64,000 nt of DNA, taken from NCBI RefSeq assembly GCF_006345805.1, contig NC_043000.1, forward strand, positions 67,890,001-67,954,000, given 5' to 3'. Shown here one piece after another: positions 4,243 through 62,852 of this stretch. This stretch comes from Octopus sinensis. Lineage: Eukaryota. Under the pieces are notes generated by a model. That model was not told where the DNA came from. It ran no database searches and saw only the letters and a program-made list of their open reading frames with translations. The translations under genes were made by a program, and so were the position numbers. Each line of letters opens with the position of its first letter. The first letter of the stretch is position 1.

Positions 4243-5049
4243 ATGTCGTGGAAAGATGTTATGAATAATTTAAGTGGGTTTTATGAACGAGAACAGCAGC
4301 AGAAAAAAGTAAGGAATTATTTGGAAAACCAATCATTTACTGCAGAAGATCGTGCGGCAGTGATCGACTGGATGGTAGCTTGTGTAGATCATTATGTAGT
4401 TTCTTTCGAAGTCTTTTATCTTGCAGTTTCTTATTTTGATATATACATGTCTGGAAAAGACACAAAACTAATTACTTCCTCTAAGCTGCAATGTCTCGGA
4501 GCCTCATGTCTTTGGATTGCTTTTACTCAGTTATCTCAAGACCAGGATAAACTGGAAAATTTTCTGGATATGGTATCGGTCACAGACCCTCACTCTAGTG
4601 AAAAGGATCTTTATGACATGTTTAGTCATATTATGAATCGATTCCACTACAAAACGTATTTAATAACACCGTATAATTTTCTAATGAGCTTCATTTTTAT
4701 TCTCCGTTTGGAACGTCATCACAATCTGACCTGGATGTCACGTTATATACTGGAGCTAGCGCAATACGATGCGGATATTTGTGTAACAAATAGGTTTAGA
4801 CCGAGTCTTATAGCAACAGCTGCTCTTTACACAGGATTAGTAGCTTTGAGACTCACTGTTGAATGGATCTCTGACTTGTCTATTTTAACACCGTATACTG
4901 GAAGGGAATACGAATTAAAAATTGTTCATCGTCGAATGTTGAAATTATTAAAAATCGCTTCTCCATACATATATAGGTCAGTATACACGAGATACAGCAG
5001 AAAAGAATTTAATCACGTTGCTTTGGTTGATTTTTCATTTATTTATTAA
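4243..5049 (+). CDS. Intronless divergent cyclin A/B-like protein (268 aa; N- and C-terminal cyclin folds, no destruction box)
   Basis: DRAAVIDWMV (MRAILxDW), EVFYLAVSYFD, KLQCLGASCLWIA, RYILELA.YD, PSLIATAAL..., W...L...T.Y, SVYTRYSRKEFNHVA. Uninterrupted ORF; ATTAAA at 5089-5094. Confidence 0.85.
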   Translation: MSWKDVMNNLSGFYEREQQQKKVRNYLENQSFTAEDRAAVIDWMVACVDHYVVSFEVFYLAVSYFDIYMSGKDTKLITSSKLQCLGASCLWIAFTQLSQDQDKLENFLDMVSVTDPHSSEKDLYDMFSHIMNRFHYKTYLITPYNFLMSFIFILRLERHHNLTWMSRYILELAQYDADICVTNRFRPSLIATAALYTGLVALRLTVEWISDLSILTPYTGREYELKIVHRRMLKLLKIASPYIYRSVYTRYSRKEFNHVALVDFSFIY

Positions 5050-16534: not shown

Positions 16535-18225
16535 ATTTTTGCAACAATAAAGAAGTACAAATTTCTTTTATTAAAGATAATCCTAGGAATATATGAGTAA
16601 CAAGATACCTTTCTATGATCCGCAAAAACTTTTCCGTGATCGCTGGAGCTGAGAAAAAAAGGGAGCTAAATCACCGTCGGATCACACCCTACTAAGGGCG
16701 CACGCTAGATTATCCTAGATAACCTTTAAACAGATTTGATGGTCACGGATGTAATGTCTTTGTCGTAGATTTACTTGATCAGAGATAAGGTGGAACTAAA
16801 ATACAACAACAATTAATTTATTCACTCCGGAGGAATGACAGGCAAAGATGACTTAGTCGTGTTTGAACTGAAAACGTAGATAGGCCTAATTAAATGTTGC
16901 CGGCCATTTGTGTTATCACCAGGTTAGCCTTGATCGAGTAGACACATAGACAAATATCATCTGTCATCCAGCTTCTGTCCTTTTTATTCTCGGGGATAAA
17001 GACTGTCCGATAAGTCCTGATTAATTCAATACGCTAAAATATAATTTGAAGGATATTAGACTTGTTTCTAGCAGGTGAAATGACACGAAGAGGGCCGTAC
17101 GGAAAGACTTCCGTTCCCCTCCCCATTTTCTCCGAATTTTTTTTGCCAAGTGTTTAGTCCGGTACTGCAGAGCATTTTCTGTTATTCCATCATTGTCATA
17201 TACATAACAATAGTTTCTGTTAATTAACAAAGTACAAAAACCTGAGAATTTATAGTGGTAAATGAGAGATGGCGTTTGCGCCTTTCGGAGGACGAACAGT
17301 ATGAATAGAATCAATGACCAGTCAAACCACGCAACAATCTCGGTTTGCTTGGAGCTCATCTTACGGCCTTACCAAAGTCTCGAAGAAATTAAAATTTCTA
17401 TAACAATTATTCATGAAGCAGAATACAAACTGAAAGATCTCGAACAAAATGCTCCTTTTTAGATTATTTATCATTAACTTTATATTATATATGAAACGAA
17501 ATTTTTAAAAATACGATTTATTTTAATAAATCAATAAAATTTAAGCTTTCTCGTTAAAACCTGTATTTTGATATTCAAACAAGTTCATAGGTTGCTGTTA
17601 TTTTTTAATTATCTTTTTAAGAAAACATTTTGTAGTTAATGCTCTGAGAATATATTGCAAGTTATAGTTTACATCATACAGCCAACCTTTTTAAGATCCT
17701 TTCAAGGTTCCTTTTCCTGTCTTTGAAAATGTTCGTGATACTGTATTTAATTCAATGCATACATATGTGCGTGTAGTTGCATACTTCATACTTATCGGAG
17801 ACGTGTATATCTTGAATATTCTAAATTAAATAGGTTTCAATTCACATGGGTCAAATTTATAATAAGAAACTGGGGAAAGAAGGAGGAAGAAACGTTTTGA
17901 AAGGAAAATGTATCGGAGATAAATGTATTTTCGAATAAAAATTATTTGTAGGTTATTAATGAAAGAAATACTCCCACTTTTATACAGATGTGTAATTTAG
18001 TAATCAGCAACGATTTTAACAAATTATAGCCACAATTTGATTAGTAAACATTTTGGAAAGTAATATCTAGAGGAAAAAATCTGTTTTAATAATTTCCAAA
18101 ATTAATTTTAATAATTCTAATACGTAACTTCCGCCTTAAAATGCCACTACACACGAACCAGGTAATGTCACAAGAAACCATCTGAAAAAGGGGAAGAAAA
18201 GTGAAATTAAAAAGAAATAAATAAA

Positions 18226-18333
18226 TCTACAATATCTCCCATAATTCATCTATTGCACTGGAGGGTTGTTTGCTTGTTCATGTCTCAGCTCCATAGTTTG
18301 GAGCGAGGTGTTATAATATGCCCAAGATGAAAG
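18226..18333 (+). CDS. Putative first exon (5'UTR plus coding 18318-18333, MPKMK-G, phase-1 donor), paralogous to eIF1A exon 1
   Basis: taatATGCCCAAGATGAAAG|gtaa versus eIF1A taatATGCCAAAGAATAAAG|gtaa (21/24). The 5'UTR block 18226-18255 aligns with 52583-52615 (28/33 columns). Confidence 0.65.
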
Positions 18334-20274
18334 GTAACGTACAGTTAGCATGTAACAGTTGCCTGTAAGAATGTAACATGTTCGGTGATTTTGGCTGCTA
18401 CATTTGCCTTCTGCTTGCCGTGCATTTCCTCGTGGATTTATGTGTTGTATGTTTGCTTTGTACTACAAATCTTCCCGTCGAAAAAATAGAACAGTGCTGC
18501 ATAGGCAGCCTGTGAATTAATTCTCTGTCTTTAATAATAATACTTTTGCAATACACGACTTTAAAAAGGGTACATTTTTTTTAGCTAGTTTTAATTATAA
18601 GTTCATACATATGTTTAATGTTTTAATAATTAAAATAACTGTTCTTGTCTATGCTTTTTCTTTTTTTTTTTTCTGGAATGGCCTAATTGCTAGTCTGGGA
18701 ACGTACTCTTGCTAATGTTCTGTAAAATAATTAACAACCATGCTTTTTATCGAACTAACAATTCCAATAATCCTATATCTTATACTTGAAGAAATCAGAA
18801 GTAATTATTGTAATTTCTTCTTTTAGTATGTACTATAACCAAACATATTTTCAATAACTTAAGCTGTTTGCTCCGTGAAAATGTTCAATATACCATCGTG
18901 TAGCCATACATCATTCCTTTGCGCATCTTGCGAAAATACTGTATTTTTCTAACGAAATATTCAAAATTGGTTGTTTGTTTTTTGATTAAACTGTCTATTC
19001 TTATTATTTTTAACTGTAAGCTTATTTTGCATTCTAAAACTCATTTTTATAAGAAATCTGACGTAATTGATTCTTGTAAATTACCAAATAATCGGTAAAA
19101 ATATTTCATTGCTTGTACATGCCTTTTCTCACTGATATTTGTCATGCTATTTATTGGATTAATATTATCGTTAATCGGGAAATTTAATTGTTAAGCTTAT
19201 TTTTTGATTAACAATAAAATGAGTATCTTAATTTTGATTCATAATTCTATACCAACACCTATGGTTTTTCTATATTCCTCGATTTTCCAATCTAACCCGA
19301 TGAATTACTTACTGTTACTCTTTTGCCGACTCAATTCACTGTTAATTTTCTCGGATTGTTTTACAAAATTATTTGCCGGTCAAAATAGTTTTTTGTGATG
19401 TAAGCTTAGATAAACGCCTTATTCGTTATGGGAACACCTGTTCCCTATCTAAGTGTAGATTTTAATCATTTAAATGTGTCTTGGTACAAGCTGCTTGATA
19501 ACTGCTAAATGTTTTTTGACTGCTAAGGGTTGCTGTAGGTAAGTATTTATAAGCTATTGGAATTGAACTGAATACTTCATATTTATACCGTTTATTTTCT
19601 CGGGGGGGTGTGCGAGAAAAAGAGAATTTGAGTCCAGCTATGTAAGCTAACGAAACGTTTCGCCAGTCACGGAGTGCTTAACGCCTGTTGTTTACAGTGG
19701 TGATTTTTTTTTCACCTCTCTGGTTACGTAGGCTGACCAATTAAGCACTCGCTGGTTTGCCTGTAGCAAGACTATAGACACAAAAAGGTCGTGTAATCCA
19801 CCGGAATGGTCGTCTGTAACTTGTGAGATCATTAAACCAACGTTATAATACGACTGACCTCAGGTAACGAGTCGACATAATGCTAAAATTTCAATTTAGC
19901 AGTAAAAACATTTAAAAGTATCTATGATGCGAAGCACCAAAGTTAAGCAAACTTGAATGTATAGATATTATAAGCTTAAAAATTATATTTGTTTTTGAAA
20001 TATCTTTAATTATTTCATTAAATAATTAAAAAAAATTATTCCATTATTTTAGTAAAGCAAAGAAAACAATATCTTGTTGAGGTTTCTATTCAATTTATTT
20101 TCCGATAGGAACTCAGTCTTACCCATTAAATTTTAGTGTGTAACAATTCAGCACCGATAGGTTTATGAGATTAACAAAAAACAATAGCTGTGGTTTCAAC
20201 CAATTAGTTCTGATGAGTTGCTAATCAAATTCCCTCCCTATTTATATTCAAGTTTAAATGTTAGTAGGTATCGT

Positions 20275-20376
20275 CGGCAGAGGTAAAGAAATACGCACAC
20301 CATCCATTTTCGGTGTAACTCTAAACTCTAGTCCTAACCCCAAACTCCGGGTGTGCATATTCTTTACCTTCGCTGG
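20275..20376. repeat. Small fold-back with degenerate (CCCTAA)-like spacer
   Basis: aggtaaagaaatacgcacacc (20281-20301) pairs with ggtgtgcatattctttacct (20350-20369); spacer contains ctaaactctagtcctaaccccaaac. Confidence 0.6.
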
Positions 20377-22133
20377 TAACGTCATTGTTTCCTTTCGCCA
20401 AATTAAATTATATTAAATATATTTGTAAAATGAGCACACATAACAGCAGAGTACAGATAGATATATCATATACCATAAAAAAAAAATTCTTGATTTCTAT
20501 GAATTATCTTCACCTCTAGAGGATGTGTTTTGGCCCCTACCTTCATACTGTATCTCCCTCTCTACTGTATCCCATTCAGTCAAAGGGGTTCATAGTCTTG
20601 CAGATCTCACATTTTTGTTTCCAATAAAAGGACATAGTGCAATAGAAAATATACCAAAGCAAAGACTGAGGCACTGTGCAGTCCTTTCACCCATTGTATT
20701 CTGTCAAACCATCCAATACATGCCAGTCGTGAAGATAGATGTTACATGATGATGTTTTATATATCATCATCATCATCCTCATTTAATATTCATTTTCCAT
20801 ACTGACATGAGTTGGATGATTTCATTGGAGCTGGTAAGACCAAGGGCCATACCAGGCTCCATTGTCTGTTCTGGTATGGTTTCTGCAACTGGATGCCCTT
20901 CCTAACACTAACCACTCCACAGAGCATATTGGGTGCTTTTTATGTGGCATCAACACCAGTATCAATTCTGCTGTGTACTTCTTTGAGTACAGCAATGTGC
21001 CATGTATCTCAGTCCTTAGTCATCTCCTTTGTAAGGCTCAGTGTCTTGAGATCAGCCTTCAGTACTTTATTCTGGGTCTCCCTCCTCCACATGTTCAATC
21101 CACTTAGACACACTCACACACCATGTGGTTTTGTATTCAGTTCAGCTGCATAGTACCGTGGGCAAGAGTCTTCTATTATAACCTCAAGCCAATCCAAACC
21201 TTGTGGGTAGATTTTGTAGTTCATCCTTTGTGTGCATGTGTACCTTTTGTCTTGACATCACGTAATTGTTGTAAATGAGCATCATCTTCATAAAAGCAAT
21301 CTTATTTTGTTTCCAGTCTTCTATGAATTTTTTTTTTTTTTGACCATGAGAAGTATTACCTTGTTTGAAAACAGGTCAGAGTTGGTGGCAGGAATGGCAT
21401 CTGGTGGTAAAAAAGATGTCTCTTCAAATTCTGTCTGACCCATACAAGCATGGAAAAGTGGACATTAAATTATTAAATGAAAATTGTATATGTATTTTAA
21501 ATAATTGATAGGAAAGACAGTGTACTATTATCTTTACAGACCATTTTATAGACCGGACAGGATAGGTATTAGAGTTGCTTTGTTTGCTGTAAGATTAGAT
21601 AACCCTCACCTTCCCATGGTATATTCATTCACTCAAGGTTTTGTAACTGAGGTGAAGAGGAGAAAGTTATGACAGTAAAACCAAAATGGTTTGTGGAAGG
21701 AAACAGGAGTGTTTAGGAGATTGTAATTAGGTTTTGGTGAAATTAATGTTGCAGTGTATTTTGCATTTGAAAGTAGTGGACTTGTAATTGAAGTACTTAT
21801 TCTGCTCTGGTGTTTGGTGTGGAGGAACATCTTGTTGGGATGAAAGGTTGACATAGTTCAGTTAAGGGAGTAATTGGTGAAGTTGGTGGGAGCTTCATAC
21901 AAATTGACTTTGCTTAGTGGTTCACATATATATATATATTTCTGCTCACCTCAGCCATGTAACCACACACATGCCTTTTGTAAACTTCTTTTCTGGACCT
22001 TTCCTTCCTCCTTTTTCTGATGAAGAGCTATGTTTGAAATGTAAAAAACTCCACACTTTTTTCCACTTTTACTGACCATCAAGCTAATATGTTCCATATA
22101 TATTGTTTTGATATTTTTAATATTTGATTTGAC

Positions 22134-22192
<59 letters not shown>

Positions 22193-22193
<1 letters not shown>

Positions 22194-24450
22194 ATCAGAG
22201 TAAGTGACAGAATACTTAAGATTAGAATAGTGCTTCATCATAGATTAGCAACCATTATATCGGCCTATGCCCCTCAGCCAGGGCTACCCGATGGACAGAA
22301 AGACAGTTTCTATGACACCGTACTGCAGACCACCTCATTGACGAACGACAGGGACCTTCTCTTTGTGGCTGGTGATTTCAATGGGCATGTTGGACGACAT
22401 GCTGGGGGCTTCCATGGGGTACATGGAGGCTACGGTTATGGTTCCCGCAACGAGGAGGGAACCAGGCTGCTGGAGTTCTGCGATGCGAATAGTCTTATGG
22501 TTTGCAACACTAACTTCAGGAAACCGACAAACCACCTTGTCACCTACTGATCGGGCCGGCATACTAGCCAAATCGACTACATCCTTGCCAGAAAAAGGGA
22601 AAGATGGCTGCTTATAAATGCCAAAACCTTCCCAGGCGAAGAATGCACCTCACAACATAGACTGGTAGTTAGTGACTTTAGGATCAGGACTAAGAGGGCG
22701 ACTAGAAGACGACCAACATGGAGAAGAAGGGTCTGGAAGCTTAAAGACCCTGTGAATGGACAGAGATTTAGAGACATGTTACTTGAAGCCTTTGACGAAA
22801 TGGAAGGGGGTATAGCTACACATGGGGTAGAAGACAACTGGACACTTCTGAGGGACTACCTGCTGAAAGCCACTGACCAGATCTGTGGCTGGTTCAAAGT
22901 CCCCTTAAGACCCAAAATAACGTGGTGGTGGAACAATATTGTTGACAGGGCTATTAGACCAAAGAAACAGGCTTGGAAGGACTGGAAGAATGGTGGTAGC
23001 AGGGAAGTGTATCAGACTGCCAGAAGGGAAGCTAGGAGACAGGTCTATCTAGCCAGAGGGGAAGCAGATAAGAAAAAATTTGCCAATGTCCTGCGCCGTG
23101 AGGATGAAAGACTTGAGGTATTTCGTGTTGCAAGACAGTGTGTGAGAGAGAATCGTGACGTGATAGGAGAGAAATGTGTTCGCAAGGATAACAGTTCACT
23201 TGCGCTAAATGAGGATGCAAAGAGAGAGGCTTGGAGACGCCACTATGAAAGGTTGCTGAATGAGGAAAATGAATGGGATAAAGAGAGTCTGCCGAATGTT
23301 GACCCAACAGAGGGACCAGCAATCCGAGTTAACAGTTCCTTAGTAGTTAAGGTAATTACAAGCATGAAAACAGGGAAAGCCCCAGGCCCATCAGGAATTA
23401 CTGCAGAGATGCTCAAAATATCTGGTAGTGTCGGCTATAGCCTAGTCACCCGTATAGTTAACCAGGTGATACACGAAGGAGTCATACCCAATGACTGGTG
23501 TAGCAGCATAATAGTCAACTGCTACAAAGGTAAAGGTGACACTCTAGATACAAATAACTACAGGGGTATCAAGTTGCTGGATCAGGTAATGAAGGTTACG
23601 GAGAGGGTTATAGCCCAATTAATTAGAGAGAGAGTTAGCTTAGATGAGATGCAGTTTGGGTTCGTGCCGGGGAAAAGTACTACTGATGCTATATTCCTGG
23701 TAAGCCCCTGTACCTGGCTTTTGTTGACATGGAGAAAGCCTTTGACATGGTCCCCTGATCCCTTATCTGGTGGTCAATGAGGAAACTAGGGATAGATGAA
23801 TGGTTAGTGAGAGCTGTGCGAGCCATGTACAGAGACACTGCTAGTAAGGTGAGGGTTGGCAACGAGTACAGTGAAGAATTCCGGGTAGAGGTTGGGGTCC
23901 ACCAAGGTTTAGTCCTCAGTCCCCTCCTATTTATCATAGTCCTCCAGGCAATAACGGAGGAATTCAAGACAAGATGCCCCTGGGAGCTCCTCTATGCTGA
24001 TGACCTTGCTCTAATTGCTGAGTCACTATCAGAACTGGAGAAGTTTCAGGTGTGGAAACTTGTTGAGGCAAGTGAAAATCAAACCAAATCAAAATAGATG
24101 AACATCAATGGAATTTGTATCTTTGTGGTACCAGTGCCGGTGGCACATAAGAAAACCATCCGAACGTGGCTGTAGCCAGTACCACATCGACTGGCCTCCA
24201 TGCTGTGGGCACGTAACAAACACCATCCGATCGTGGCCGTTCGCCAGCCTCGTCTGGCACCTGTGTCGGTGGCACATAAAATCACCCACTACACTCTCGG
24301 AGTGGTTGGCGTTAGGAAGGGCATCCAGCTGTAGAAACACTGCCAGATCTGACTGGCCTGGTGCAGCCTTCGGGCTCCCCAGACCCCAGTTGAACCGTCC
24401 AACCCATGCTAGCATGGAAAGCGGACGTTAAACGATGATGATGATGATGA
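22193..24450 (+). mobile_element. 5'-truncated RTE-clade LINE (partial APE, RT, internal deletion, 3' tail)
   Basis: ISAYAPQ...AGDFNGHVG (APE); GKAPGP, NYRGIKLL, QFGFVPGKSTTDAIF, GVHQG.VLSPLLF, LLYADDL (RT). Stop at 22548-22550, deletion/frameshift near 23700, (GAT)n tail. Confidence 0.9.
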
Positions 24451-24999
24451 TATATACAAGCATGAATGCAGGGTTATATGAACATGTAACCACACACATT
24501 CTGTATGAGGATGCAAGGAAACATACATGCACATGAGCATACACAGCATTCAGGTGCACATGCATACATCTACATATGTATATGAATGTGTCTTTAAACA
24601 TGTATATGTCTTATTGGCTGTTGGTGCAAAATGCACTCTTGTTTAGATCACATGATTTTAACCTTTCTTGGTCTTGTCAGTGATGGATGCTTGACCACTA
24701 TGTATGCATATACTTATTTATATATATATGTATGTTTGTATATAAGGATCTATGTGTGTGTGCACACACACATGTAAACTATCATCATTTAACATCCATG
24801 TTCCATGCTGGCATTGGGTGGACAATTTAATAAACTCTGGTGGATCCAAGGATTGCATCACATTCCAGTATCTGTTGTAGCATAGTTTCTAGGACTGGAT
24901 ATCCTTCCTAACGCCACCCATTTTGTAGCATATACCACAACCTCTTATACTGCTTTCACTTGCCAGGGATATCTTCTTGCTGGCTTTGTTCAGTTGCTT

Positions 25000-26270
25000 C
25001 GGTTCCCAACTAATCTTATGGGTAAGGCTCACCGAGGCAATGGCTAGTGACTAGGCTCAGTCACTAGTCATTGCCTCAGTGAGGCCTAGTGTTCGAAGGT
25101 CATACTTCACCACCTCATCACAGGTCTTCCTGGGTCTATCTCTTCCACAGGTTCCCTCAAACACTAGGGTGTGGCACTTTTTCACACAACTATTCTCATC
25201 TATTCTTGCCACATGACCATACCAGCACAGTTGTCTCTCTTGCACAGCACATCTGATGCTTCTTAGGTCCAACTTTTCTCTCAAGGTACTTACATTCTGT
25301 CAAGTATGCACACTGACATTACACATCCAGTGGAACATACTGGCTTCATTCCTTGTGAGCTTACGCATGTCCTCAGCAGTCATGGCCCATGTTTCACTGC
25401 CATGTAGCATGGCTGTTTGTACACGTGTCATACAGTCTACCTTTTACTCTGAGTGAGAAGCCCTTTGTCACTAGCAGAGGTAAGAGCTCTCTGAACTTTG
25501 CCCAGGCTATTCTTATTTATAGCAGCTACACTTTCAGTGCACCCACTGACTTGGTCACCTAGGTAATGGAAGCTATCAACTACTTCTAGTTTTTCTCCTT
25601 GAAATGTGACAGAAGTTGTTCTCTGCACATTTTCAGTGTTTACTGCTCCTGAGCATTTGCCAAATACAAACACTATCTTCCCCGTTAGCCTTCCTTTGAT
25701 ATTGCTACACCTCTTATGTGTCCATAGCTTGTACTGGGTACATCTTATAGAGTTGCTACCTACACCTTTTCTACAGATCAAGCAGGGCCATCTACTTGAA
25801 GGGATTTGTGGTTTGTCTACCTTCCTACTTAGAACTTTGGTTTTAGCTAGGTTAACTCTAAGGCCCTTCAATTCTAATCTTTGCTTCCACCCCTGAAACT
25901 TCTCCTCTAGTTCTGATAGTGTCTCAGCAATTAGATCAACATCGTCAGCATAGAGGAGGTCCCATGGGCATCCTGTCTTGAATTCTTCTGTTATTGCCTG
26001 GAGGACTATGATAAATAGGAGAGGGCTGAGGACTGAACCTTGGTGGACCCCCTACCTCTACCCGGAATTCTTCACTGTACTCGTTGCCAACTCTTACCTT
26101 ACTGACAGTGTCCCTGTACATGGTTTGCACAGCTCACAATAACCATTCATCTATCCCTAGTTTCCTCATTGACCACCAGATAAGGGATCGGGGGACCCTG
26201 TCAAAGGCTTTCTCTATGTCAACCAAAGCCAGGTACAAAGGTTTATCTTTGGCTTTTCCCTGTCATACAT
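25000..26270 (-). mobile_element. RTE-LINE RT/C-terminal remnant
   Basis: YRDTVSKVRVGNEYSEEF, KGLRVNLAKTK, EVVDSFHYLG, EGTCGRDRPRKT. Confidence 0.85.
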
Positions 26271-26516
26271 GTAGAAAGAGAAGGTCGACTCAAATATTTG
26301 AGATGATAAGCAATCTAGTATAAATATATATTTTTGTAGAGCAAACTTACTCAGTTTACATAGACTCAAAGAATTAGAAGGGAGAAGGCATTACAAGTGT
26401 GGCAGCTGTTTCTGAGGGCTCAGAGATATTTCATAATGTTAGCACATATAGTTGATAAAAAAAAATTTGCAGCCAGTAACAGAAACAAGCAAACATTGGT
26501 GACCTCCAGAGCCTCC

Positions 26517-26556
<40 letters not shown>

Positions 26557-27583
26557 ACTTGATTGTTTATCATCTGAAATTTTTGAGTCTGCCTTTTTTT
26601 AAAATCTTGTATACATGTTTATATATTTTGTACGTTAAAACCCAAGGTTTTATCTGTTTATTTGAATCATTATCTCCATATCTGCTCACTTGGATTCCAC
26701 TTATAGCCACTCATTACCCTGCTGATGTAGATATCGAAGTGTAAGTTCAAATCATTTGAATGCTACTGAGTATTTTCGATACTGAAATTCTCTTGATTTC
26801 ATCTATTGAAACATATATAAACATTTAAATATCCAGATTTCCATATTTGTTTGAGCTGGACAGAATTTATTGAGACAGATTTTCTATTGCTGGATGCCTA
26901 TTTTGTCACCAATCTTCACTCATTTCCAAGCAAGGTAATGTTTCCTCATGGTCAGACATGTTCTCACAGAATATTGGAAAAGAGTGACACTGATTGTATC
27001 ACTGTGACACTCATTTACACATGATGTCAAACACACACATTCCTCTTTCAGTTTCTAACTACCAAATCCACTCAAGAAAGCTGTGGTCAACCCAGGACTA
27101 TAGCTGCAAAACTCAAAAATAACTATATCTTCTTTTATACAAAAGACTCGAAGCAGCATGTGACTCCTTGTTTTCCCTTCTTCTCAACCATCTTTATTAT
27201 GTTTGTTATACATGTTTAAGTAAATTATATATGCCAAACTCACCTTTAAAATACCAATATAATTTCAGCTAAGCTGTAATATAAGAACACTTATTCTGTG
27301 AAAAAAGTATTGTTATATTTCTACTTTTCATACATATAAACACAGCATTAAATGATTTTTAACTTATGTTTGAAGTTAAACTGGTTTTAATTACACAGCA
27401 TCAAACTAATACACCAGCTTGTTGTTCCCTCACCGGTCTTGTTTTGTTTTCTGTACATTTGAACTAATATATATGTGTGTGTGTGTGAATACTTTGAGCT
27501 GCGCAGATAATACCGGACTGACTTGGTGCTTCAACTTAAGTAACTAATACAGCTGAATCTTAATTATTTCTCTGTGTGTGTGC

Positions 27584-27621
<38 letters not shown>

Positions 27622-27628
27622 TATTTAA

Positions 27629-27847
27629 CCCTTTTGTTACCATATTTCTGTTGAGATGCTCTGTGTTTCTTTCAATTAATTTTAAATATAACAAAGAATT
27701 TAGTAAAATAACTTAATCATTAAGATAGTTTTAAGAACATAAATTGTGACTAAGGTTTGATGGAAGATTTTAATTCAGAACTTTTGAAAACAAGACATTT
27801 GTACTACAGAGCCAGAAGCGGTTTCAGGTGGGTTGGTATCAAAAGGG
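27629..27847. mobile_element. piggyBac-type MITE (TTAA TSD)
   Basis: TTAA-cccttttgttacc ... ggtatcaaaaggg-TTAA (27625-27628; 27848-27851). Confidence 0.8.
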
Positions 27848-28099
27848 TTAATAAAGACAATATGTGTTTTTATATGCTACTATTATTAGTTTCATGTGAT
27901 GAGAGTATGCCATGTAGATTGTTAAACCCAGCAGGAACTAAAATTGGGCTAGTAGTTAAAAAAAAATACTAAGAAACATTAATAATAAAATTAAAGAGAC
28001 CAAGTTTTACTGTAATAGTTTAGTTCAAGAACATTAAGAATAAACATAGGGCTAGTTTTACTCAGTTTGACATAGTGTTATCCCTCCATACCAAGATTG

Positions 28100-29300
28100 C
28101 TACTTGATAAAGCCATCAAGTTTGCTAAATCATGTTGATATAGACCCTGTAAACCTAAGCTTTATCACCATGTGAGGAAAACACTACTGTTTAGTAAGAG
28201 CTCAGCATGGATAAAAATGTTAGATAATGATGAATTGTTTGATGTATCAATGGAATTATGTAATAGTGCTGATGTCTGTGATCTTGTGGGTCTCTGTATT
28301 AAACACATTGAGATCTAATGATGTTGGTCTATACTGAAATGACAAATTGGGTATTTCCCATGGCTGTAATGATCACACCCTAGATAAATTTAGGAGTCAA
28401 CTTACTTCAACCTTCAGTCAATTAGGCCTTAAAATCACAGTTGCTACTAATCAGTCTAAAGTTGATTTTTTAGATGTTTCATTAGTCCTGAACTCCTCTT
28501 ATAAACCTTATCATATGCCCAATGAGAAACTTTTTTATATACATAGCCTTGTCACCCTGTAGAATCTTAAAATCTAATAGCTAACATTAGTAACAGAATT
28601 TCTAACCTTTGTTCCTCTAAAGAAATTTTCAAGAAGGCAGCCACCTACTACAACAGTGCCCTAACTAACCGTGACTTTAAGGATGAATTAATAACCCATC
28701 TAATATTAATAGGAATGATAATAATATGACCTAAGAAAATCCCCCCCTCCATTAATGTAAAAACTAACACAGGTAAAAGATTCTTGTCTCTCCTAGACAA
28801 AACATTTTCCAGAAAATCACAGGTATGGGAAAATATTTAACAGGCATACAGTGAAATTATATAGCTGCTGCCCCAATATGAAAAGCATCATTACATGAGA
28901 ACAACACCAAGATCCCTCTCCCAGTTGTAACTTTCGAGACCCAGGAACCTGTCCACTCAACCAGAGATATATGATTAAATCTGTCATATATGAGGCAGAA
29001 GTTACAGCAATGCAATATCATAACACAATCTTTAAAAAGAGCTATATCAGACTGAAGGCAAATTCAGAAATCACTATGCTAATCACATATCTTCCTTCTG
29101 ACACAAGGACATAAAAAAAAGTAAAGCTAGCAACATATGGGGTTTGAAGTTGAAAAATCCACGCCATATGTTAACAGATCAAAAAATGTAAGCTATGCAT
29201 AGCTGAAAGAACTAGGATCTAAAAACACTAACACACTATTGAATTCTAGATCCAAAATTTTCAGTAGTTGTAAGCATATGGCTAAGTTCCTGTTGATGAA
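28100..29300 (+). mobile_element. Penelope-like element remnant (RT plus GIY-YIG), heavily degraded
   Basis: FDVSM..ADVCDLVGL; TFSQLGLKIT...KVDFLDVSL..YKPY..PN..YIH; NVKTN.GKRFL.LLDK; C....CPL...VIYEAEV. Confidence 0.7.
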
Positions 29301-29935
29301 TTGGAAAGTGCCGCCCTTTCTGGTTTGAACAGGTGTACCACAGACTCTAAGCTGCTATCTTATCAAACTTATATTTTACAGTCAAAGGGAAGAGTACTCT
29401 GATCCCCCTCTCTTTTGCTTCTTTGTTTTCCAATTTTTCAACTTTCTAACTTCTTTCTCGCCGTTTCTCACTTTTTCTTTCATCCTATTGTCCCATTTTC
29501 AGTTATGTCATGTAGTCAGTGCCCGAAGGTTGTGCTAGGACACCAGATGTGTTAAAAAAAATACTGTCTGGCATGTTCTCATCACATGAAACTAATAGTA
29601 GCACATAAAACATTGTTTATTAAATAATATTTATCTCTTACCAGGTAGAGTACTTTTTTTGTGGTCTTACTATCACAGAACAGTACACCATACACACACA
29701 CATAAAATGTTATATATATATATATATATATATATATAACATTTTTCCATTTTCTTCATTAAAATATACAATACCATACATTACTGCTGTGTTAACTAGG
29801 CTCCCTGTTGAAAGGTTACTGGTATATGTAATCTAAGGTACTTCAGTTAAATCTTGTCTTGTGATTTGGACAATCAGTGTTGTGATGTTGCTTTTGTGTA
29901 GTGGTTAGTATGAGTATATAGATGTGCATATATAT

Positions 29936-30268
29936 ATATATTGTATAAAAGATTGTGGGTAAGGCCAAAACAATGCGAAGTAAATGCTAGATAAATCACA
30001 AGAAAACTAATATGTGAATTAAAGTAGACTTACCTTATATTCAGTATTTCGGGGTTATGACCCCATTTTCAGGAAATTGACAAATGTTGCCAATATGCGT
30101 GTGTGTGAGCGCTCACGCACATCAGCAACATTCGTCAATTTCTTGAAAATTTTTGTCATAACCCCAAAATATTGAATACATGATAAGTCTACATTAATTC
30201 ACATATTTGTTTCTTGTGATTTACTTTGCATTGTTTTGGCCTTACCCACAATCTTTTATACAATATAT
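29936..30268. mobile_element. TA-flanked fold-back element (~160-bp arms), probably a Tc1/mariner-type MITE
   Basis: ttgtataaaagattgtgggtaaggccaaaacaatgc... pairs with ...gcattgttttggccttacccacaatcttttatacaa; centre near 30110. Confidence 0.85.
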
Positions 30269-30297
30269 TCTACACAATGCTTCACAGTAATTATTCC

Positions 30298-30328
<31 letters not shown>

Positions 30329-30684
30329 TACACATGGATATGTATGCATATATATGTTAAATTCCATAAATTAGTAAAAAATTTGTGAAGTACAAGATTT
30401 GTTAGAGACTTTATATTATTAAAATGTATGGTATTTATATGTAATTCTGATGAAAAGAAACATTTTCTTCATGGAAGGGGCCCCACTCAAAAAGTTACAT
30501 TTCTTCCTCAATGTGTAAAATATTTTCTCTATTTTAATTTCTACTGCTTCACTATTTATTCTTAAAGTAAGAATTATTTTTCTGTATTGTTTTGTTCTCG
30601 ATTATATGTATATAAATATTTATTTTAAGAATTTTTTAAAGACACATTTTAAGAGTTCTTTTGTGATGTCTTTTTTTTTTCCAG

Positions 30685-31769
30685 AACTTGATAAAATTAG
30701 GCTGCAGAGGCAAGTGTTTTCTATGAAACTGCAAAATCGAGACTTTCGAGACATGATATTCTTACATTACTGTGAGGGAAAAACTGTTGCTGAATCCCAA
30801 GAGGTACTTCATGAAGTATTTCAAGACCAAAGCCCCCCATATTGTACTGTTGAATTTTGGTTTAAAGAATTTGAACAAACTAATGAATGTGCGGATAGCG
30901 AAATTCTTAACACAACTGTCACACCTCAAAACATTGAAGCAGTTAAACTGTTATTAAAAGAAGATTCTAGAGTGACTTATAAAGAGTTAGAAAGTGTATT
31001 GAATATTGGATCAGAAAGTGTTCGATCAATCCTTCATGATTATTTATATGTTCGCAAACTAAATATGTGCTGGGTTCCTCAAATCTTAAGTGAAGAGCAG
31101 AAGTTGGCCAGAATGGAATGGTGTGAGTTTATGCTAAAAAAGTTTCAAAATGGAGCACATCAGAAAATTGAAAATATTGTTCTTGGAGTTGAATTCCAAC
31201 TTTATCAATATACTGAATCTAAAAAGCCATCTACAGTATGGACTTTCCTCGATGAAGATTACTATCTTAAATGGAAACATCCACCAAATGTACAAAAAAA
31301 AACAATTGTAAATTTTTTTAGTAAATCTGGTAACCTTGCTACTATTTTACTCAAAGACAAATCCAAAGTTAATCCTAGTTGGTATTTAACAAAATGTTTA
31401 CCTGAATTATTTGAAAAGATCAAAGAAGTAAGAAAAGATTCTGGACTCCAAGGTATTCTTCTCCATCATAGTAATATAAATGTTCTTACTGCTGCAGTGA
31501 CTATGGACTGTCTTGCTGAGAATAGCATTCAATTAATTACACATCCTGCTCACAGTCCTGATTTATCTCCTTGGGATTATTTTGTATATCCTAAAGTGAA
31601 AAAAGATCTTATTGGAATTAAATTTAACAAGCCTGGAGATGCTCTTAGTGCATTTATTCAAGCTACTATGTTGCTAACCCCTCAAGATTGGATTGAATGC
31701 TTTGAAAGCTGGTTTAAACATATGGAATTATGTGTGGAATCTCAAGGGAACTATTTCAAAGTAACTTGA
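30685..31769 (+). CDS. Domesticated mariner-family transposase exon, catalytically inactive (SETMAR-like transposase domain, no SET domain seen)
   Basis: Intact frame with two HTH regions, WVPQIL and HSPDLSPWD. Triad D/D/D34 is V(31188)/S(31470)/D(31575). Polypyrimidine plus CCAG acceptor at 30671-30684 (phase 1); no TIRs. Confidence 0.85.
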
Positions 31770-34700
31770 CTATATGATTTTTTTTTTTTTTATGCAGAAT
31801 GAAACTAAACATAAATATGTTTAAAAAGGAAAAGAAGTTATGTTTTTTTCAAATTACCTTCTTACCAAATTATTAGATTTTGTTTATGTAAAAAAAATTT
31901 TTCTAAGTGTATTGTAATTGTTAGATTAGTTCATGAATGTCTTTAGAGTTCTTAATGACTTTTTCTGTGATAGTATGTTTTTTTATAATAGAAATATATT
32001 TTTCAGTTGAAGAGGAAAACCTCACTAATTATAGATACTAAATACAATATTAACACTTGAAAATCTGAAAAATACTGAATCATAGGAAAATGTTCAAAGA
32101 AGTTTTAAGTTTAAAAAGAAACCCACTAACTTTGAATCAAATCTTCAATCTCAGTGAATATTCAGAGGCTTATACTGAGCAAAGGAGCTTGTCAGTTATT
32201 ATGAAGGCAGCTGTTTTCTAGCTACTTGAATTACTAGAAAAAACAGCCAAATTTCCATCAAATTGCATACTATACCTTCTTAAAAGCAAAAAGCACATTA
32301 AATACACACTACATCTGAAGTAAAAAAAAAAGATGGGATGGTCACAATTAGAATGCTTTTGATCACAGATCTATTTGCTCAGTTTAGGCTGACCTGAGCT
32401 AAACAACCACAACAATATCATTGTAAAAATATTGGCTATATTATTTATATTAAGCTGTCTTTTAAATTTCATCAATTACATGTCTTCACCTTCATTCAGA
32501 TGCGATATGTGAAACAGGTTCAGGATTTCATACATTGAAAGAATTCTGCTTGTGAAACAAAAACTTACTGGTTCCTTACTGTTTACTTGTGTTTGACTCA
32601 AAACAGCTTGCAGGATGCTTTTGTGATGTTTCAGGTTTTCTGGTTTACAAAAGGAGAAATAAGTACCCTGTTCTCATTGTTTTGTTTTGCTTTTTAATTA
32701 TTTATTTTAATATATATATTTTTTTTTCATGTTGCATGGGTTAAATGGGTTTGCAATATATTTTTCTATTTGTCTCATTTCTGTAAGGCTCCTCAGGTGT
32801 AGCCTAACTAATTCTCAAGTCTTCCTTGGTTTGATTCTAAAATGAATATTCTCCACCATCACTTCACTGCGCTTTCACTCAGCAAGCATCAGTCAGTTAC
32901 ATTAGTATTGACCTATGCTTTGATATGCAGTTATTTTCTCACTTCATGTTTTTTGTACTTCCACTAGATTACAATCAATCATTTCTCTCTCGTCACTGTA
33001 GTTTCTCTGCTTTCACTGCTATACATCTTTTATACAAGCTTGATATAGCCTTGCTCTCATACAGTGAGTAGAAACCTTTATTACCAACAGATATGCCTTC
33101 TCTAATCTCTCTACTTCCAAATTCCAATCACCATGCTGCCATTGACTCTACATGTAGCTCTAATTATATCATCTAGTTAGCAGAACTTATCTATAACTTC
33201 CAGCAAACAATTTAAACTATTCACAGTCCTCAGTGCATCGTAGCTGCTCATACTGTCATTTTCTTTATGTTCTTTTCACTTACACTATTAATTTTATGAT
33301 GTCAGTTCCTGCTAAAATCTCACTACACTTCCTGAATACACAGTATTGTGCTCCTGTACATTTTCTGAATGTCAAAAAATGTTACACTCTTGATTATGAT
33401 TGGAATTTTGTGATCTCTTGTATGAAATAATTAATTTGCTGCCTGTCAGTCTTTTAACTCTAGCCTGAGATAGAGTTGATTGCTTGGTTGCAAAGCCTTC
33501 ATTCTCAAAGTAAATTACTACTGTGACACAAACATATTTTGAAAGTTTCAGTAACTATCATGGAAGATCTTAAGTTCTCCTTATGTCATAAATTGCTCAA
33601 CTGATCTCTGTTGCTGACCATATTCCATTTATATTCCTTTTTCAGCAATTTTGCATGGTGACACTTGCATGCCACTTTCTTTTCTTTGTCTCTGGGAACA
33701 AATTTTTTTTTCCATCCAATCAGGATTCCTCACAATACAGACCTAAACATATCACTCATTTTAGCTTCATACTTTGCAGTATCCAACTATGAGTAATTTT
33801 CTGTCCATTCAGCTGTCTTTCTTTATATAAAAAGCTGTGCTTATCTTGTTTTAGTTTGAACTCATCTAGCATTATTCTGATTTGAGGCACATTCCTTTCC
33901 AGATAAGAAAAAGAAAAAAAATTAGTTCATAATTGTCAAACCCTTAATCAGAAGAATATTAATCAAGATCTCATTCTCACCTAATTGGTGAAAAACCTGT
34001 TTTTTGGCTTGCTCTCAGAGGTTTGTATTACAGACACTGAATTGATTTTCTTCACAGAACTCCAGAAACCTTACGATGCTTAGAATATTGATTGGCAATA
34101 CAACAGGCACCATGATACTCATTAGACATATGTAGGATTAACAAACAGTAGAATTGATTTTATGAGGCTCTAATGAAAGCTAAGCTGTCAAAATAGGACC
34201 ATCATAATCCCAGTTGGAGATTTCATAATAGATATTCAAGTGTTGGTTGATGATTGAAAGCTGCTGAATAAATTTATACATCTTAAAGATAATCTGTAAA
34301 AAATTTCATTTATCATGTAAAACTTGATTCATACTTTTTTTATTTTAAGATTTCAAAGATGCTGCTAAATTTTGAAGCAAAGTCAGTGTTTTTCAGCTTA
34401 AAATATTACACAAAATATATATCTGTTAAAATATATTCAACAAAACATATAACTTAATTTTTTTTTTTTTTACATCACAGATCATGTCTTTTGTAAATAT
34501 TTATACCATGATAGTATTTTTCTAAATTTACTCCATGCAGCTTCTGGTCATCCTTCATAATTCAAGAAAATGTTTTGAATCATTCTTGCTTGCAAACAAT
34601 GTAAGTATAGCAATTAACTGTGAATGGAGCATATGTGCTTCATTGTTGTAATTGTATCACTCATTATAAAAATCATACTTATCTCATTGGAAGAGATGTT

Positions 34701-36599
34701 AACCTGGTTCTTGTTTTAACTATGTTTAGGGCAATATTCAGTGTAAATCAGAAAATAAAAACTTACAAATTCCTTAATGTGCTGTTGATATATTTTGTTC
34801 TAAATGCCAGCATAAACTTTTGAGAAAGTTTTTATTCTACTTCATTATTTAAATGATCCTTTTGTTTCTTTTTGACTGTGAAATCTTTCCCTAAGGAATC
34901 TGTTGTCTCACACTAATCAGGTTTACCAAGCCAACAAAGAGTGCACCACTCAGCATGTTAAAAGTAGTGACCAAATCTCCTTCAAATCACATCCCATCAT
35001 CTTCAATTAAGAGATGGTTTTGGCTCAATATAAAAAATAAAAAGAACTGCTCCAAATATTATTGGTCATATCATCATCGTTTAACATCCGTTTTCCATGC
35101 TAGCATGGGTTGGATGGAAATATATGTGACAGAATTGTTTTATCTATATCAAACTTATTTGCATAGTAAGAGCAAAATATCAAGATTGAATCAGTTGTCT
35201 ATAAGTGAAGCAGCTGTTGAATTATCTTAAGTAAATAGTGAATTTTTTTTTTTTAAATTTCAAGTCAAATGAATAAACTTCCAATGTAACTAGTTTTACC
35301 AACTCTAGAATGCAATATCATACTCTTTATGATGAAACAAATATAAGTTGACTACACTGTATGCAGGCCAGATAACTACTGTATATACTGAAGTTATAGA
35401 TCAACATTTTCAGACCAATTTTTAAACCTGTAATTAGGTCAAACATGCCTCAATTCTGCAGGTATTGCCACAGCCCAAAATGTTTGCTTTTTCAAAAGAA
35501 TACCTGTATAGTGTTCAGCTTTCTAAATATAGGTTTCAAAACTGGTCTTGAAGTGCATGAGAAATGTGTTCATATGTTTGGTTGGTAATATAAATGCCTA
35601 TATGAAGCTCTTACAAATAATCAAGCAAATACGCAAACAAAATCACATATTTAATTACCTTAGTTATACATCCTGTATCACTGCTTGTTGGTAGTTGGCA
35701 TGTCTTTGCACAGAACACTACATCAGATTTTGATACCAAAGTTTGTGCTTTATTTCAGTATTGAATTGAGATGTGTATCTAATCTGAAGTTGAGACTTCA
35801 CATGTGCTTCTGAATAGTAGCATAACCTTTGTGGCCAAACATTTAATCATAGGATAATTTGCTCAAATAGACACTTGGAAACTCTGTAATGCAGAATTAC
35901 ACTGGCAGTCATTTAATTCTCACTGGAAATATTCTCGTACCATATTGGTTTCTAATTTTAGTTCAAGGCCAGCAATTTCAGAGGAGAGGTAAGTCAATTA
36001 CTTTGACCTCACTGCCCAACTGGTATTTTTTTCATCAACCCTGAAAGGATGAAAGGAAAAGTTGAACTCAGATTGTAAAGGTAGATAAAACACTGCTAAG
36101 CATTTTGCTCAGCGTCCTAACAATTCTGCCAGCAAGCTGTTTTGTTCTTATGCTATATTATTTCTAACAAAATGAGTCCCAGTAAACTGAAAAATCATTA
36201 TTGAAGTTTTTGAAGTTAGCAAGTCTTTGGAACTCATTCATTAACTTTAAAATTTTGATTAGTTTTCAATATTAATATGAAACATTTTGCAGTGACTTTA
36301 AAGTAGGGAAATGTATATTACCATTTAATAGTTGATAGTCAAAAAGGTTAAGTTTTATCTCAAAGGCACAAGTAAAGTCATATAAATTTATTTCTAATAT
36401 ATTGTCCTTGAGGCTATGTATTCAAGTAATTTAAATGCTCTAACTACCATGTAAACTAGACATTGAATTGTTTGACTATTTTTCAGTTTCTAGCATATCC
36501 CTTCTTTTCTGTTGCAGAAATATCTATTTCACATGACAATTCATAAAATCACTTTAGTACAACTCCCCACCTTAACCAACAAAGTTCATTATGTTATGG

Positions 36600-37260
36600 C
36601 AGTCTAGTCTACATTGTGACTTGTAAAAACAGCTGAACTCTGTGGTTCAGACTTTATAACATCCATAGCATTACACTTCAGTATTTTACTGCACAACTAC
36701 TATACCCCAAATGATGGAATGGACATAATGAAATTGATAGTTTAAGTTCACAGCTAGCAGTTATTTTAATTTTGCAGCCAAATTTTCTATCAATCATTTG
36801 CAGCGCTCCAACTGTATGAGACTCATACTTTGCATACCCCTGTGAAACTAATAAAATCCATTCTTGATATTCCTTCATTAGTACCAGTTCTACAAATTCA
36901 CATGATACATGCATATTTTTATCCATATCATGTATGTAAACATCATTTACCCATGTCATCATTTGCAATGGAAAATGTTAAGTAATATCTTTGAGTTTCC
37001 TATTAAGATTCTTCCATAAGTCACCAATTCTTTCTGTAACTGTTTCTTGAGACACAAGAGGTTTGACTTTTTTTTTTAGCAAAATCTTTTGCAGCTATCA
37101 ACCTACATTTCTTTATAAAATTCCCTTCTGATAATGGTTTCTGTGACAGCTTATAGCTTGTCTTAACTGCAATATCACTGACTTTATGGGCATATTTAAA
37201 TACTGACAATATTCCATGATGGCTCCTCTACAATTCTCTCAAGGGGTTGAAGGTTCAAGA
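36600..37260 (-). mobile_element. hAT (Charlie/SPIN, GTF2IRD2-like) transposase remnant
   Basis: AVKTSYKLSQKPLSEGNFIKKC.L.AA...; TVTERIGDL..NL...LK...FSIA.DD. Confidence 0.55.
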
Positions 37261-44276: not shown

Positions 44277-44757
44277 ATGGCTTCAGGTTTGCCTTCATTT
44301 ACGGGGGATATGGGCCTGTGGTTTGCCCAAGTGGAGTGGTATTTTGATGCACATGCCATTTCTCCACAGCAGCAGTTGCACCTGCTATATTCCGGCTTAC
44401 ATCCCCGACTCGCCGCATCGATCAGGGATCTAATAATAAGTCCCCACCCGGATGCCACATACGCGTCTGTGAAAGCAGAAATCCTCCGCCGCAACACACG
44501 TTCGGGGAGAGCAATATTCAGATTGCCACGATGGCCGATGGAATACTGGAATTTCCGAATCCATCTCCATCGCGAGGCCTCTGTGCATGTATAGGGGGCC
44601 CTGCGCAAATTTCACTAGCCGAGCGGATTGATGCGCTCACGCGGCGAATCGACGATCTATCCGTGCGATCGAGCGCCGACAACGCAGTCGTAGTCGCTCT
44701 ACCAAAAGGGCAGATCGGTGTACCCAGCCGTGCACTTTCAAGCCCTCGGAAAACTAA
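44277..44757 (+). pseudogene. Gypsy gag, internally deleted/frameshifted
   Basis: LPSFTGDMGLWFAQVEWYF...YASVKAEILRR, then IATMADGILE in another frame, then ADRCTQPCTFKPSEN* in a third. Possible -1 slippery site GGAAAAC at 44748-44754 leading into the pol frame. Confidence 0.75.
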
Positions 44758-47700: not shown

Positions 47701-47995
47701 CCGTTTCCGTGGACCGTTTAAAAAAGGCACATTTTGAGACGTCTTCATCTTTTGATGACAACCTTGACACACCCCCTATGCACCTTTAACAACACTTTCA
47801 CCTGCACAAACGCCTTCACCTGCACAAACGCCTTCACCTGCACAAACACCTTCACCGGCTCCTACAACACCACCCTCGCCGTCAACGGGTGCCCCGAGCA
47901 CACCGTATGTTACAAAATCGGGCAGAACAGTGCATTGGCCAAGAAACTTTCAAAAACAATTTACATTTAACTTTAAAATGTTTCTTATTGTATAA
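44718..47995 (+). pseudogene. Gypsy pol (protease, RT, RNase H, integrase) with four frameshifts
   Basis: VDTGS; SPWASPLH|..DFRPVGDYRRLN; YVDD; VDASD..ELLAIY..TDHKPL..ADALSR; H..HPG..C..CQ; [21 protein letters not shown]; PYKGPF; TKSGRTV. Breaks near 45430, 46950, 47340 and 47770. Confidence 0.9.
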
Positions 47996-52657: not shown

Positions 52658-52673
52658 ATGCCAAAGAATAAAG
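52658..52673 (+). CDS. EIF1A: Eukaryotic translation initiation factor 1A, coding exon 1 (MPKNK-G)
   Basis: ATGCCAAAGAATAAAG|gtaag, 16 nt, phase 1; same size as vertebrate EIF1AX coding exon 1. Confidence 0.9.
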
Positions 52674-62768: not shown

Positions 62769-62852
62769 GTAAGGGAGGTAAAAACAGAAGGCGAGGTAAA
62801 AACGAAAGTGAGGATGTGAAAAGAGAACTTGTTTTCAAAGAAGATGGTCAAG
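62769..62852 (+). CDS. EIF1A: Eukaryotic translation initiation factor 1A, coding exon 2
   Basis: ttttttag|GT AAG GGA GGT AAA AAC AGA AGG CGA GGT AAA AAC GAA ... GAT GGT CAA G|gtatgt = [28 protein letters not shown]; 84 nt, in frame with exon 1. Confidence 0.95.

Follow-up and report, generated by a model that had tools for sequence, protein, structure and literature searches.

Structure of the gene carrying the mariner exon

The window analysed here is a stretch of 64,000 nucleotides of the Octopus sinensis genome (NCBI RefSeq assembly GCF_006345805.1, contig NC_043000.1, positions 67,890,001 to 67,954,000 of the forward strand), and its subject is an exon at 30685-31769 that is related to mariner transposases. 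A cyclin gene, a short first exon, the mariner exon and the gene for the translation factor eIF1A follow one another in the window, and the same order is found, colinear, in Argonauta hians (locus L001, on chromosome BAAFZT010000002.1; Table 1). We consider that 30685-31769 is very probably the main coding exon of a functional host gene that originated from a mariner (DD34D) transposase, and not a transposon.

On the forward strand the frame is open over 30606..31769, or 387 codons counted from the nearest upstream ATG, and closes with a TGA at 31767-31769. At the local base composition (about 30% G+C) the probability of 387 stop-free codons is about 1.6e-13; over the same interval the two other forward frames are interrupted by 21 and 47 stops, and no other open reading frame (ORF) of more than 61 residues was found between 29.5 and 33 kb. 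An earlier note on this DNA, made from its letters alone, had described an uninterrupted frame of about 361 codons, the loss of two of the three catalytic Asp (LGVE and HSN for TGDE and HDN) with the third at the D34D spacing, the retention of WVPQIL and SPDLSP, and a likely original start at ATG 30723. All of this stood: the frame is full-length and free of frameshifts, the alignment with Mos1 agrees on the catalytic residues, whose coordinates were all correct, both motifs were found where expected, and related mariner proteins have their start Met at the position of this ATG.

Residues 23-357 of the window protein align end to end with residues 12-341 of the Mos1 transposase (E 1.4e-21; PDB 3hos/4u7b), the protein also aligns with the transposase domain of human SETMAR, and Pfam HTH_48 (PF17906, the helix-turn-helix, HTH, of Mos1 transposase) is recognised at residues 18-64 of the 360-residue translation with an E-value of 6e-8. 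HMMER found 6045 relatives. Exactly 34 residues separate catalytic positions 2 and 3, and the S-P-D-L of SPDLSP is invariant across a 12-sequence alignment. The Val at position 1 and the Ser at position 2 are the same in the three orthologs compared (this window, a second Octopus species and Argonauta), while the third residue is Glu (PWEY) in Argonauta, which gives a V, S, E triad there against V, S, D in Octopus; the intact D,D(34)D triad of an active mariner is absent from the gene. An AlphaFold2 model, which is of low confidence (predicted local distance difference test, pLDDT, of 61) and was used for fold assignment alone, with no residue-level claims, retrieved Mos1 at E 1e-18 in a structure search, and its RNase-H-like catalytic fold superposes on the catalytic domains of SETMAR and Mos1 with template modelling scores of 0.76-0.81 and root-mean-square deviations of 3.4-4.6 Å.

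Active mariners carry terminal inverted repeats (TIRs) of about 28-30 bp on either side of the ORF. A search of 29.8-32.7 kb gave no inverted repeats bracketing the mariner ORF, in agreement with the earlier claim that TIRs are lacking, and returned only AT-rich chance pairs and a separate foldback at 29936-30268. No further copies of the gene were found in the window, at protein or DNA level, or in five related loci of about 160 kb in total, and the protein databases hold, from this gene family, the window gene and one 48%-identical paralogue and nothing else; judged from these sequences, the gene is likely to be single-copy. The foldback itself comprises 333 nucleotides of near-perfect nested inverted repeats, with outer arms of 50 nucleotides at 98% complementarity, and lies 400 nucleotides 5' of the mariner exon, bordered by (TA)n/(CA)n runs. 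It occurs once in the window and in none of the related loci, and it is not a mariner TIR pair.

The mariner exon does not stand alone, which refines the earlier note: it is spliced to a five-codon leader exon 12.3 kb upstream. When 18318-18333 is joined to 30685-31769, the translation is that of O. vulgaris CAI9721526.1 at 366 of 366 residues. Position 30685 falls at codon position 2 (phase 1), so that the start of the exon is not itself in frame. Argonauta has an identical exon 1 coding sequence with the donor at the same position (L001 10001-10016, G/GTAATG, the slash marking here and below the exon boundary), and the acceptor of the mariner exon, ...cttttttttttccAG/AACTT, is kept both in Argonauta and in the contig of the second Octopus from the Logan assembly; the sequence of intron 1 is otherwise poorly conserved. 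The region around the leader exon is one of the few blocks between 5.1 and 30.6 kb that can be aligned with the Argonauta locus, and the 150 nucleotides upstream of the leader ATG align between window and Argonauta better than expected from shuffling (p<0.002). Within intron 1, 340 nucleotides 3' of the leader exon, a block of 60 nucleotides (18673-18732) is 82% identical to L001 10478-10536 and may be a regulatory element.

Between the acceptor and the ancestral start codon lies a linker that is now translated and that probably derives from the 5' untranslated region (UTR) of the element. All 38 of its 38 nucleotides are identical in the second Octopus species, whereas identity falls to 84%, with many gaps, immediately 5' of it, and comparison with Argonauta gives 0 nonsynonymous and 3 synonymous changes. 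The strong acceptor and exonised linker proposed earlier are thus borne out, as two independent annotations (O. vulgaris CAI9721526.1 and A. hians GAB1597971.1) place the exon boundary at this point and conservation begins there.

A second O. vulgaris isoform, CAI9721525.1, has 413 residues compared with the 366 of CAI9721526.1; it leaves the mariner exon by an alternative donor, and its tail continues into 34541-34600 and about 36503-36604 of the window. The tail exons have no counterpart in the Argonauta locus and are therefore not counted in the conserved gene, and CAI9721525.1 is probably a minor, non-conserved isoform. The two annotated isoforms and the conserved splice sites are indirect indications that the window gene is expressed as a spliced mRNA. 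Just past the stop, a 57-nucleotide block (31798-31854) is 86% identical to an Argonauta block located about 700 nucleotides further downstream there (L001 15348-15405), and is probably a conserved 3' UTR element that was split off by an insertion in Argonauta. Present annotations name the protein "hypothetical protein" in O. vulgaris and, for A. hians, "serine-rich adhesin for platelets-like isoform X6"; the latter label is misleading, the name having probably been transferred from a Ser/Thr-rich fusion gene.

Table 1. Features of the window and their counterparts in related loci. L001, A. hians chromosome BAAFZT010000002.1; L003, O. bimaculoides CM046617.1; L005, A. hians BAAFZT010000080.1. 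All window features with a strand given lie on the forward strand (+).
Feature	Window position	Strand	Related locus	Remarks
Cyclin synteny block	4262-5055		L001 4800-5593
Intronless cyclin gene, upstream end of the synteny block	4243..5049	+	L001 4781-5587	268 residues; Pfam Cyclin_N and Cyclin_C
Exon-1 region: synteny block, conserved 5' region (putative promoter, 5' UTR and first exon)	18012..18374	+	L001 9718-10051	67% identity over 374 nucleotides
Coding exon 1	18318..18333	+		ATGCCCAAGATGAAAG; MPKMK and first base of codon 6; 16 nucleotides; donor GTAACG at 18334
Intron 1	18334..30684	+		12.35 kb; polypyrimidine tract and AG at 30670-30684
Mariner exon synteny block	30671-31788		L001 13557-14660	84.5% nucleotide identity
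Exonised linker	30685..30722	+		(E)LDKIRLQRQVFS; upstream of ancestral start codon
Mariner transposase-derived coding sequence	30723..31769	+		348 codons and stop, from ancestral ATG
First helix-turn-helix	30738..30878	+		Pfam HTH_48 (PF17906)
WVPQIL	31071..31088	+		Equivalent of mariner WVPHEL linker motif; alignment with Mos1
Catalytic position 1	31188..31190	+		Val for Asp (LGVE for TGDE); aligns with Mos1 D156
Catalytic position 2	31470..31472	+		Ser for Asp (HHSN for HDN); aligns with Mos1 D249
SPDLSP	31554..31571	+		Equivalent of mariner YSPDLAP motif; alignment with Mos1
Catalytic position 3	31575..31577	+		Asp kept (PWDY); aligns with Mos1 D284
Alternative donor CAAA/GTAACT	31761..31762	+		Used by CAI9721525.1; two codons before stop
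eIF1A exon 1 synteny block	52519-52714		L001 22385-22583
eIF1A exon 1	52658..52673	+		ATGCCAAAGAATAAAG/GT; MPKNK; length and phase equal to those of the leader exon at 18318..18333
eIF1A exon 2	62768-62851	+		tblastn with human EIF1AX
Paralogue B			L003 9954-11062 (O. bimaculoides); L005 6001-41542 (A. hians)

Orthologs and selection

Using protein searches, we recovered a 97%-identical protein from the Logan assembly of another Octopus, and GAB1597971.1 of A. hians, which has 361 residues and is 86% identical; the cluster of the Octopus protein also contains CAI9721526.1 and CAI9721525.1 of O. vulgaris. Around the mariner exon, the sequence can be aligned with Argonauta from 14 nucleotides before the exon to 19 nucleotides past the stop. 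The cyclin gene at the upstream end of the synteny block is also single-exon at the syntenic Argonauta position and may be an old retrogene.

Against Argonauta, four methods put the ratio of nonsynonymous to synonymous substitution rates (dN/dS, or omega) at 0.06-0.12, for a dN of about 0.06 and a dS of 0.5-1.0 (about 0.8); the NG86 estimate is 0.076, and bootstrapping of codons places its 95% interval at 0.047-0.113. By segment, omega is 0.012 in the first HTH (2 nonsynonymous and 18 synonymous changes), which is the most constrained part, 0.041 in the DNA-binding half and 0.097 in the catalytic half. The change of the third Asp to Glu in Argonauta indicates that this conservation is not preserving an active site. 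Against the second Octopus species omega is 0.11-0.16, and the ORF is 96.5% identical without a gap, while the flanks show 84-92% identity and dozens of gap columns. The earlier note had named dN/dS near 1 and disablements in orthologs as signs that would speak against a domesticated gene: neither was seen, the lone insertion or deletion among the three orthologs being an in-frame deletion of 5 codons in Argonauta, and purifying selection is supported by both comparisons. The inference of domestication itself is supported by the orthology, the selection, the intact orthologs, the exon boundary and the loss of TIRs.

A dS near 0.8 suggests that the Octopus-Argonauta split is deep; a fossil minimum of about 29 million years has been used as its calibration (PMC12682272). 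Word-indexed and exhaustive HMMER searches gave no squid, cuttlefish, vampire squid or nautilus protein closer than the paralogue described below, a negative result that is weak because few genomes of these groups have deposited proteins.

Origin of the leader exon and a paralogue beside SMARCE1

The leader exon resembles the first exon of the neighbouring eIF1A gene, the exons of which were located by tblastn with human EIF1AX and from an Argonauta gene call with Pfam eIF-1a. The block TAATATGCCnAAGAnnAAAGGTAA of the leader exon matches eIF1A exon 1 (52654-52677) at 21 of 24 positions; with their context the two sites read TAATATGCCCAAGATGAAAGGTAA (18314-18337) and TAATATGCCAAAGAATAAAGGTAA (52654-52677), both have 16 coding nucleotides, the same phase and the same donor, and the encoded peptides are MPKMK and MPKNK. 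A pattern search for eIF1A-like first exons was also made, with a pattern built from these same two sites, and it is thus a check of uniqueness only. Within the window, the 150 nucleotides upstream of the two exons align with each other better than 500 shuffles (p<0.002). No eIF1A-like exons, as a decayed duplicate would have left, were found between 18.3 and 52.6 kb. Since both exons are present in Argonauta, any duplication is older than the Octopus-Argonauta split. From these likenesses, the leader exon and its promoter were probably copied from the 5' end of eIF1A and would now drive the mariner exon.

The closest relative of the window protein in a HMMER search of 1.84e9 representatives is XP_014783185.1 of O. 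bimaculoides (353 residues, 48% identity, E 9e-108), and the next matches are at most 38% identical. This protein, which we call paralogue B, is labelled "SETMAR-like" and lies on a different chromosome from the window gene, directly 3' of SMARCE1/BAF57. Its 90% cluster includes GAB1609329.1 of Argonauta, with 1243 residues, which consists of an N-terminal SMARCE1/BAF57 part (E 1e-88 with human SMARCE1, with HMG box), a long Ser/Thr-rich middle and a C-terminal mariner protein. In O. bimaculoides the mariner ORF is located 4.4 kb 3' of the annotated end of an HMG-box gene, on the same strand, and a homologous Ser/Thr-rich exon with a consensus phase-1 donor (ACTTCAG/gtaggt) lies between the two. 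Paralogue B keeps all three Asp (VEDQ, HHDD, PCDY) and an R-x-S-R-P stretch between the HTH regions; its Octopus and Argonauta versions are 91% identical with an omega of 0.06, and it evolves more slowly than the window gene.

The two paralogues are sisters in 482 of 500 neighbour-joining bootstraps on 93 mariner proteins. They have 17 residues in common that are rare elsewhere, including CW(V/I)PQ, and both carry the changes R to C and H to Q in the (R)WVPH motif, which are rare in 87 other mariner proteins. The two also have the same acceptor position (cag/ARCTTGAYAAARTT) and the same phase, 1, and their translated linkers are homologous: ELDKIRLQRQVFS-M for the window gene, ELDKVKQQTNLSVFT-M for paralogue B of O. 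bimaculoides and LYKVRQQTNLSVFS for that of Argonauta. From the shared acceptor, phase and linker it follows that either a single exon was captured and then duplicated, or two members of the same element family, both with this cryptic acceptor, were captured independently. On parsimony we favour a single capture followed by duplication, as a reading of the sequences, with separate capture as the alternative.

Function, known systems and alternatives

Lacking metal-binding Asp residues, the protein is predicted to be unable to cut DNA. It would bind DNA in a sequence-specific manner, probably as a dimer, using its bipartite HTH and the transposase scaffold it has kept, and by analogy with the MAR domain of SETMAR its targets would most likely be sites derived from the TIRs of the extinct source family. 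A leader exon, and probably a promoter, taken from the 5' end of eIF1A would give it a broad expression, and as a stand-alone protein it may share target sites with the SMARCE1-linked paralogue or compete for them. The gene is thus a candidate sequence-specific DNA-binding factor and possibly a module for BAF targeting, the sites of which may be dispersed transposon remnants, and it bears on the regulation of the repeat-rich octopus genome.

The best-known comparison is SETMAR (Metnase) of anthropoid primates, where a SET methyltransferase gene acquired Hsmar1 as a 3' exon. The window gene is likewise full-length, immobile and under purifying selection, likewise spliced to upstream host sequence by an acceptor just 5' of the transposase ATG, and likewise combines an altered triad with a DNA-binding HTH domain that is its best conserved part. 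By contrast with SETMAR, it has an independent origin from another mariner lineage in another phylum; it adds five host-derived residues (MPKMK) alone and no host domain, so that there is no in-frame fusion to a functional host domain; and it has lost two Asp in Octopus or three in Argonauta, whereas the catalytic triad of SETMAR carries a single D to N change and its MAR domain acts by DNA binding without cleavage. Its 5' exon also looks copied from eIF1A, and its paralogue is linked to a BAF subunit and not to a histone methyltransferase. The SMARCE1-mariner arrangement of paralogue B is a closer architectural analogue of SETMAR than the window gene is.

With Mos1, Himar1 and Hsmar1 (IS630-Tc1-mariner, DD34D) the window gene shares the order of HTH1, HTH2, a WVPHEL-type linker and an RNase-H-like domain with a YSPDLAP-type motif, as well as the spacing of 34 residues. 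It differs from autonomous mariners in having no TIRs, no sign of multiple copies in the sequences searched, a V/S/D triad, a host exon, a fixed position and purifying selection. To our knowledge mariner-derived host genes are rare, SETMAR being the textbook case, with a small number lately reported from Drosophila. In tetrapods, alternative splicing that joins host exons to transposase exons has given rise to host-transposase fusions (Cosby et al., bioRxiv 10.1101/2020.05.07.082677), a route of birth that is the same as here, with an acceptor upstream of the transposase ORF and a phase-compatible host donor. A catalogue of Tc1/mariner-derived genes, which covers drosophilids, uses the loss of TIRs and target-site duplications, purifying selection, conserved microsynteny and expression as criteria of domestication (PMC13548663); of the sequence-based ones, TIR loss, purifying selection and conserved microsynteny are found for the window gene. 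A metazoan survey lists pogo/CENPB, THAP, ZBED and other families for Octopus, with mariner not reported (PMC10027918), and in the literature searched neither a mariner-derived gene of cephalopods nor a SMARCE1-transposase fusion was described. The window gene thus brings these features to a mollusc, a setting where no such gene was described in that literature. It also makes the process of birth visible, as a phase-1 "transposase exon cassette" of acceptor, translated linker and ORF at two loci, one behind a subunit of a chromatin remodeller and the other behind what appears to be a copied housekeeping first exon.

Several points weigh against parts of this account. The likeness to eIF1A consists of the 24-nucleotide block and one significant upstream alignment, and three cross-species or Argonauta promoter comparisons with eIF1A were not significant (p 0.14-0.34), for which reason we hold the paralogy of the two first exons to be probable and not shown. 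Transcript support is indirect and comes from the O. vulgaris annotation pipeline, which merged Iso-Seq, RNA-seq and ab initio models (PMC10700109). The SMARCE1-mariner fusion comes from a single annotation, that of Argonauta, and is otherwise backed by the order and strand of the genes and by donors of compatible phase; when the complete Argonauta fusion protein was used as a query, ordinary SMARCE1 proteins alone were returned and no second fusion. Between the Ser/Thr-rich and mariner exons there is also a DKNDK micro-exon, of 15 nucleotides in Argonauta (L005 40192-40206) and of 14 in O. bimaculoides (L003 9660-9673), where its inclusion would break the frame; the discrepancy could reflect exon skipping, a run of A that was misassembled, or a true difference between the species. 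The low-confidence structural model was built on a 7-sequence alignment, and the copy number refers to the window, the related loci and the protein databases. The short linker between the HTH regions has lost 4 residues, including the R-x-G-R-P-like stretch kept by most relatives and by the paralogue, so that DNA recognition may differ from that of a canonical mariner.

The simplest alternative, that the exon is an ordinary mariner copy, recent or slowly decaying, with a frame kept open by luck or recency, would agree with the full-length transposase homology and with the fact that mariner copies are common in octopus genomes. It is refuted by the presence of the same locus in Argonauta with a dS of about 0.8 but a dN of 0.06; the replaced catalytic Asp, the missing TIRs, the conserved splice sites and leader exon and an open-frame chance of about 1e-13 also stand against it, and we regard it as extremely improbable. 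It is very unlikely, in our view, that the mariner exon is instead an alternative terminal exon of an extended eIF1A unit, in which eIF1A would have a second, upstream first exon at 18318 that is usually joined to its exon 2 at 62768, the mariner exon serving a side isoform alone. The match of the two first exons in length, phase and near-identical sequence, their common strand at a distance of 34 kb and the lack of further eIF1A-like exons between them are in its favour; both annotations, however, splice exon 1 straight to the mariner exon, and the proposal concerns the architecture of the gene and not its domestication, as the strong protein-level constraint on the mariner exon implies a functional product even if the transcription unit is shared.

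A domesticated protein could also serve as a transposon repressor, the dead protein poisoning active mariner transposases of the same family through mixed dimers or by occupancy of their TIRs and so protecting the genome. The parts related to dimerisation (HTH1, WVPQIL and the catalytic scaffold) are kept despite the lost catalysis, with an omega of 0.10 in the catalytic half, and Tc1/mariner elements, including recently active families, are abundant in O. vulgaris (repeat table of PMC13282606). On the other hand, the searches gave no close intact relative (outside the paralogue, the nearest proteins are at most 44% identical and come from unidentified marine samples), which leaves no visible active partner to repress, and an omega of 0.08 over the Octopus-Argonauta distance fits a cellular function better than a repressor engaged in an arms race. 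A repressor is therefore possible but distinctly unlikely, and less likely than the DNA-binding host factor that we prefer. As an extension of that DNA-binding host factor, we can also imagine a two-part system in octopods, a lineage known for large-scale genome reorganisation: the C-terminal mariner exon of SMARCE1 would tether BAF to hundreds of old mariner-TIR sites, and the dead window copy, under a housekeeping promoter derived from eIF1A, would tune this tethering by competition or heterodimerisation. This scheme is speculative and we think it unlikely; if true, it would parallel SETMAR in an invertebrate and would rewire a core remodeller of chromatin, and the paired arrangement and the link to BAF57 are the parts that could raise the importance of the gene.

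The earlier note had also set the intact mariner frame against broken coding regions of other transposons in the window, and this agrees with what we found, namely a gypsy pol split over several frames and LINE-like and Pif1/Helitron-like fragments. The Ty3/gypsy-type pol at 44500-47800 (+), with RVT_1, RT_RNaseH, Integrase_H2C2 and rve domains, is split over at least 3 overlapping frames and is therefore a degraded long terminal repeat (LTR) retroelement. At 22.1-23.8 kb and 25.4-25.9 kb (-), ORFs resembling reverse transcriptases gave no Pfam match at E<=1e-3. An ORF of 173 residues at 57609-58130 (-), probably a piece of a Helitron-like or Pif1-like element, contains a Pif1 2B helicase domain. 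Finally, a G+C-rich tandem array at 10930-11965 has 17 copies of a 61-nucleotide unit, with higher-order periods of 123 and 244 nucleotides and matches of 82-91%, and makes long spurious ORFs of up to 349 residues on both strands.

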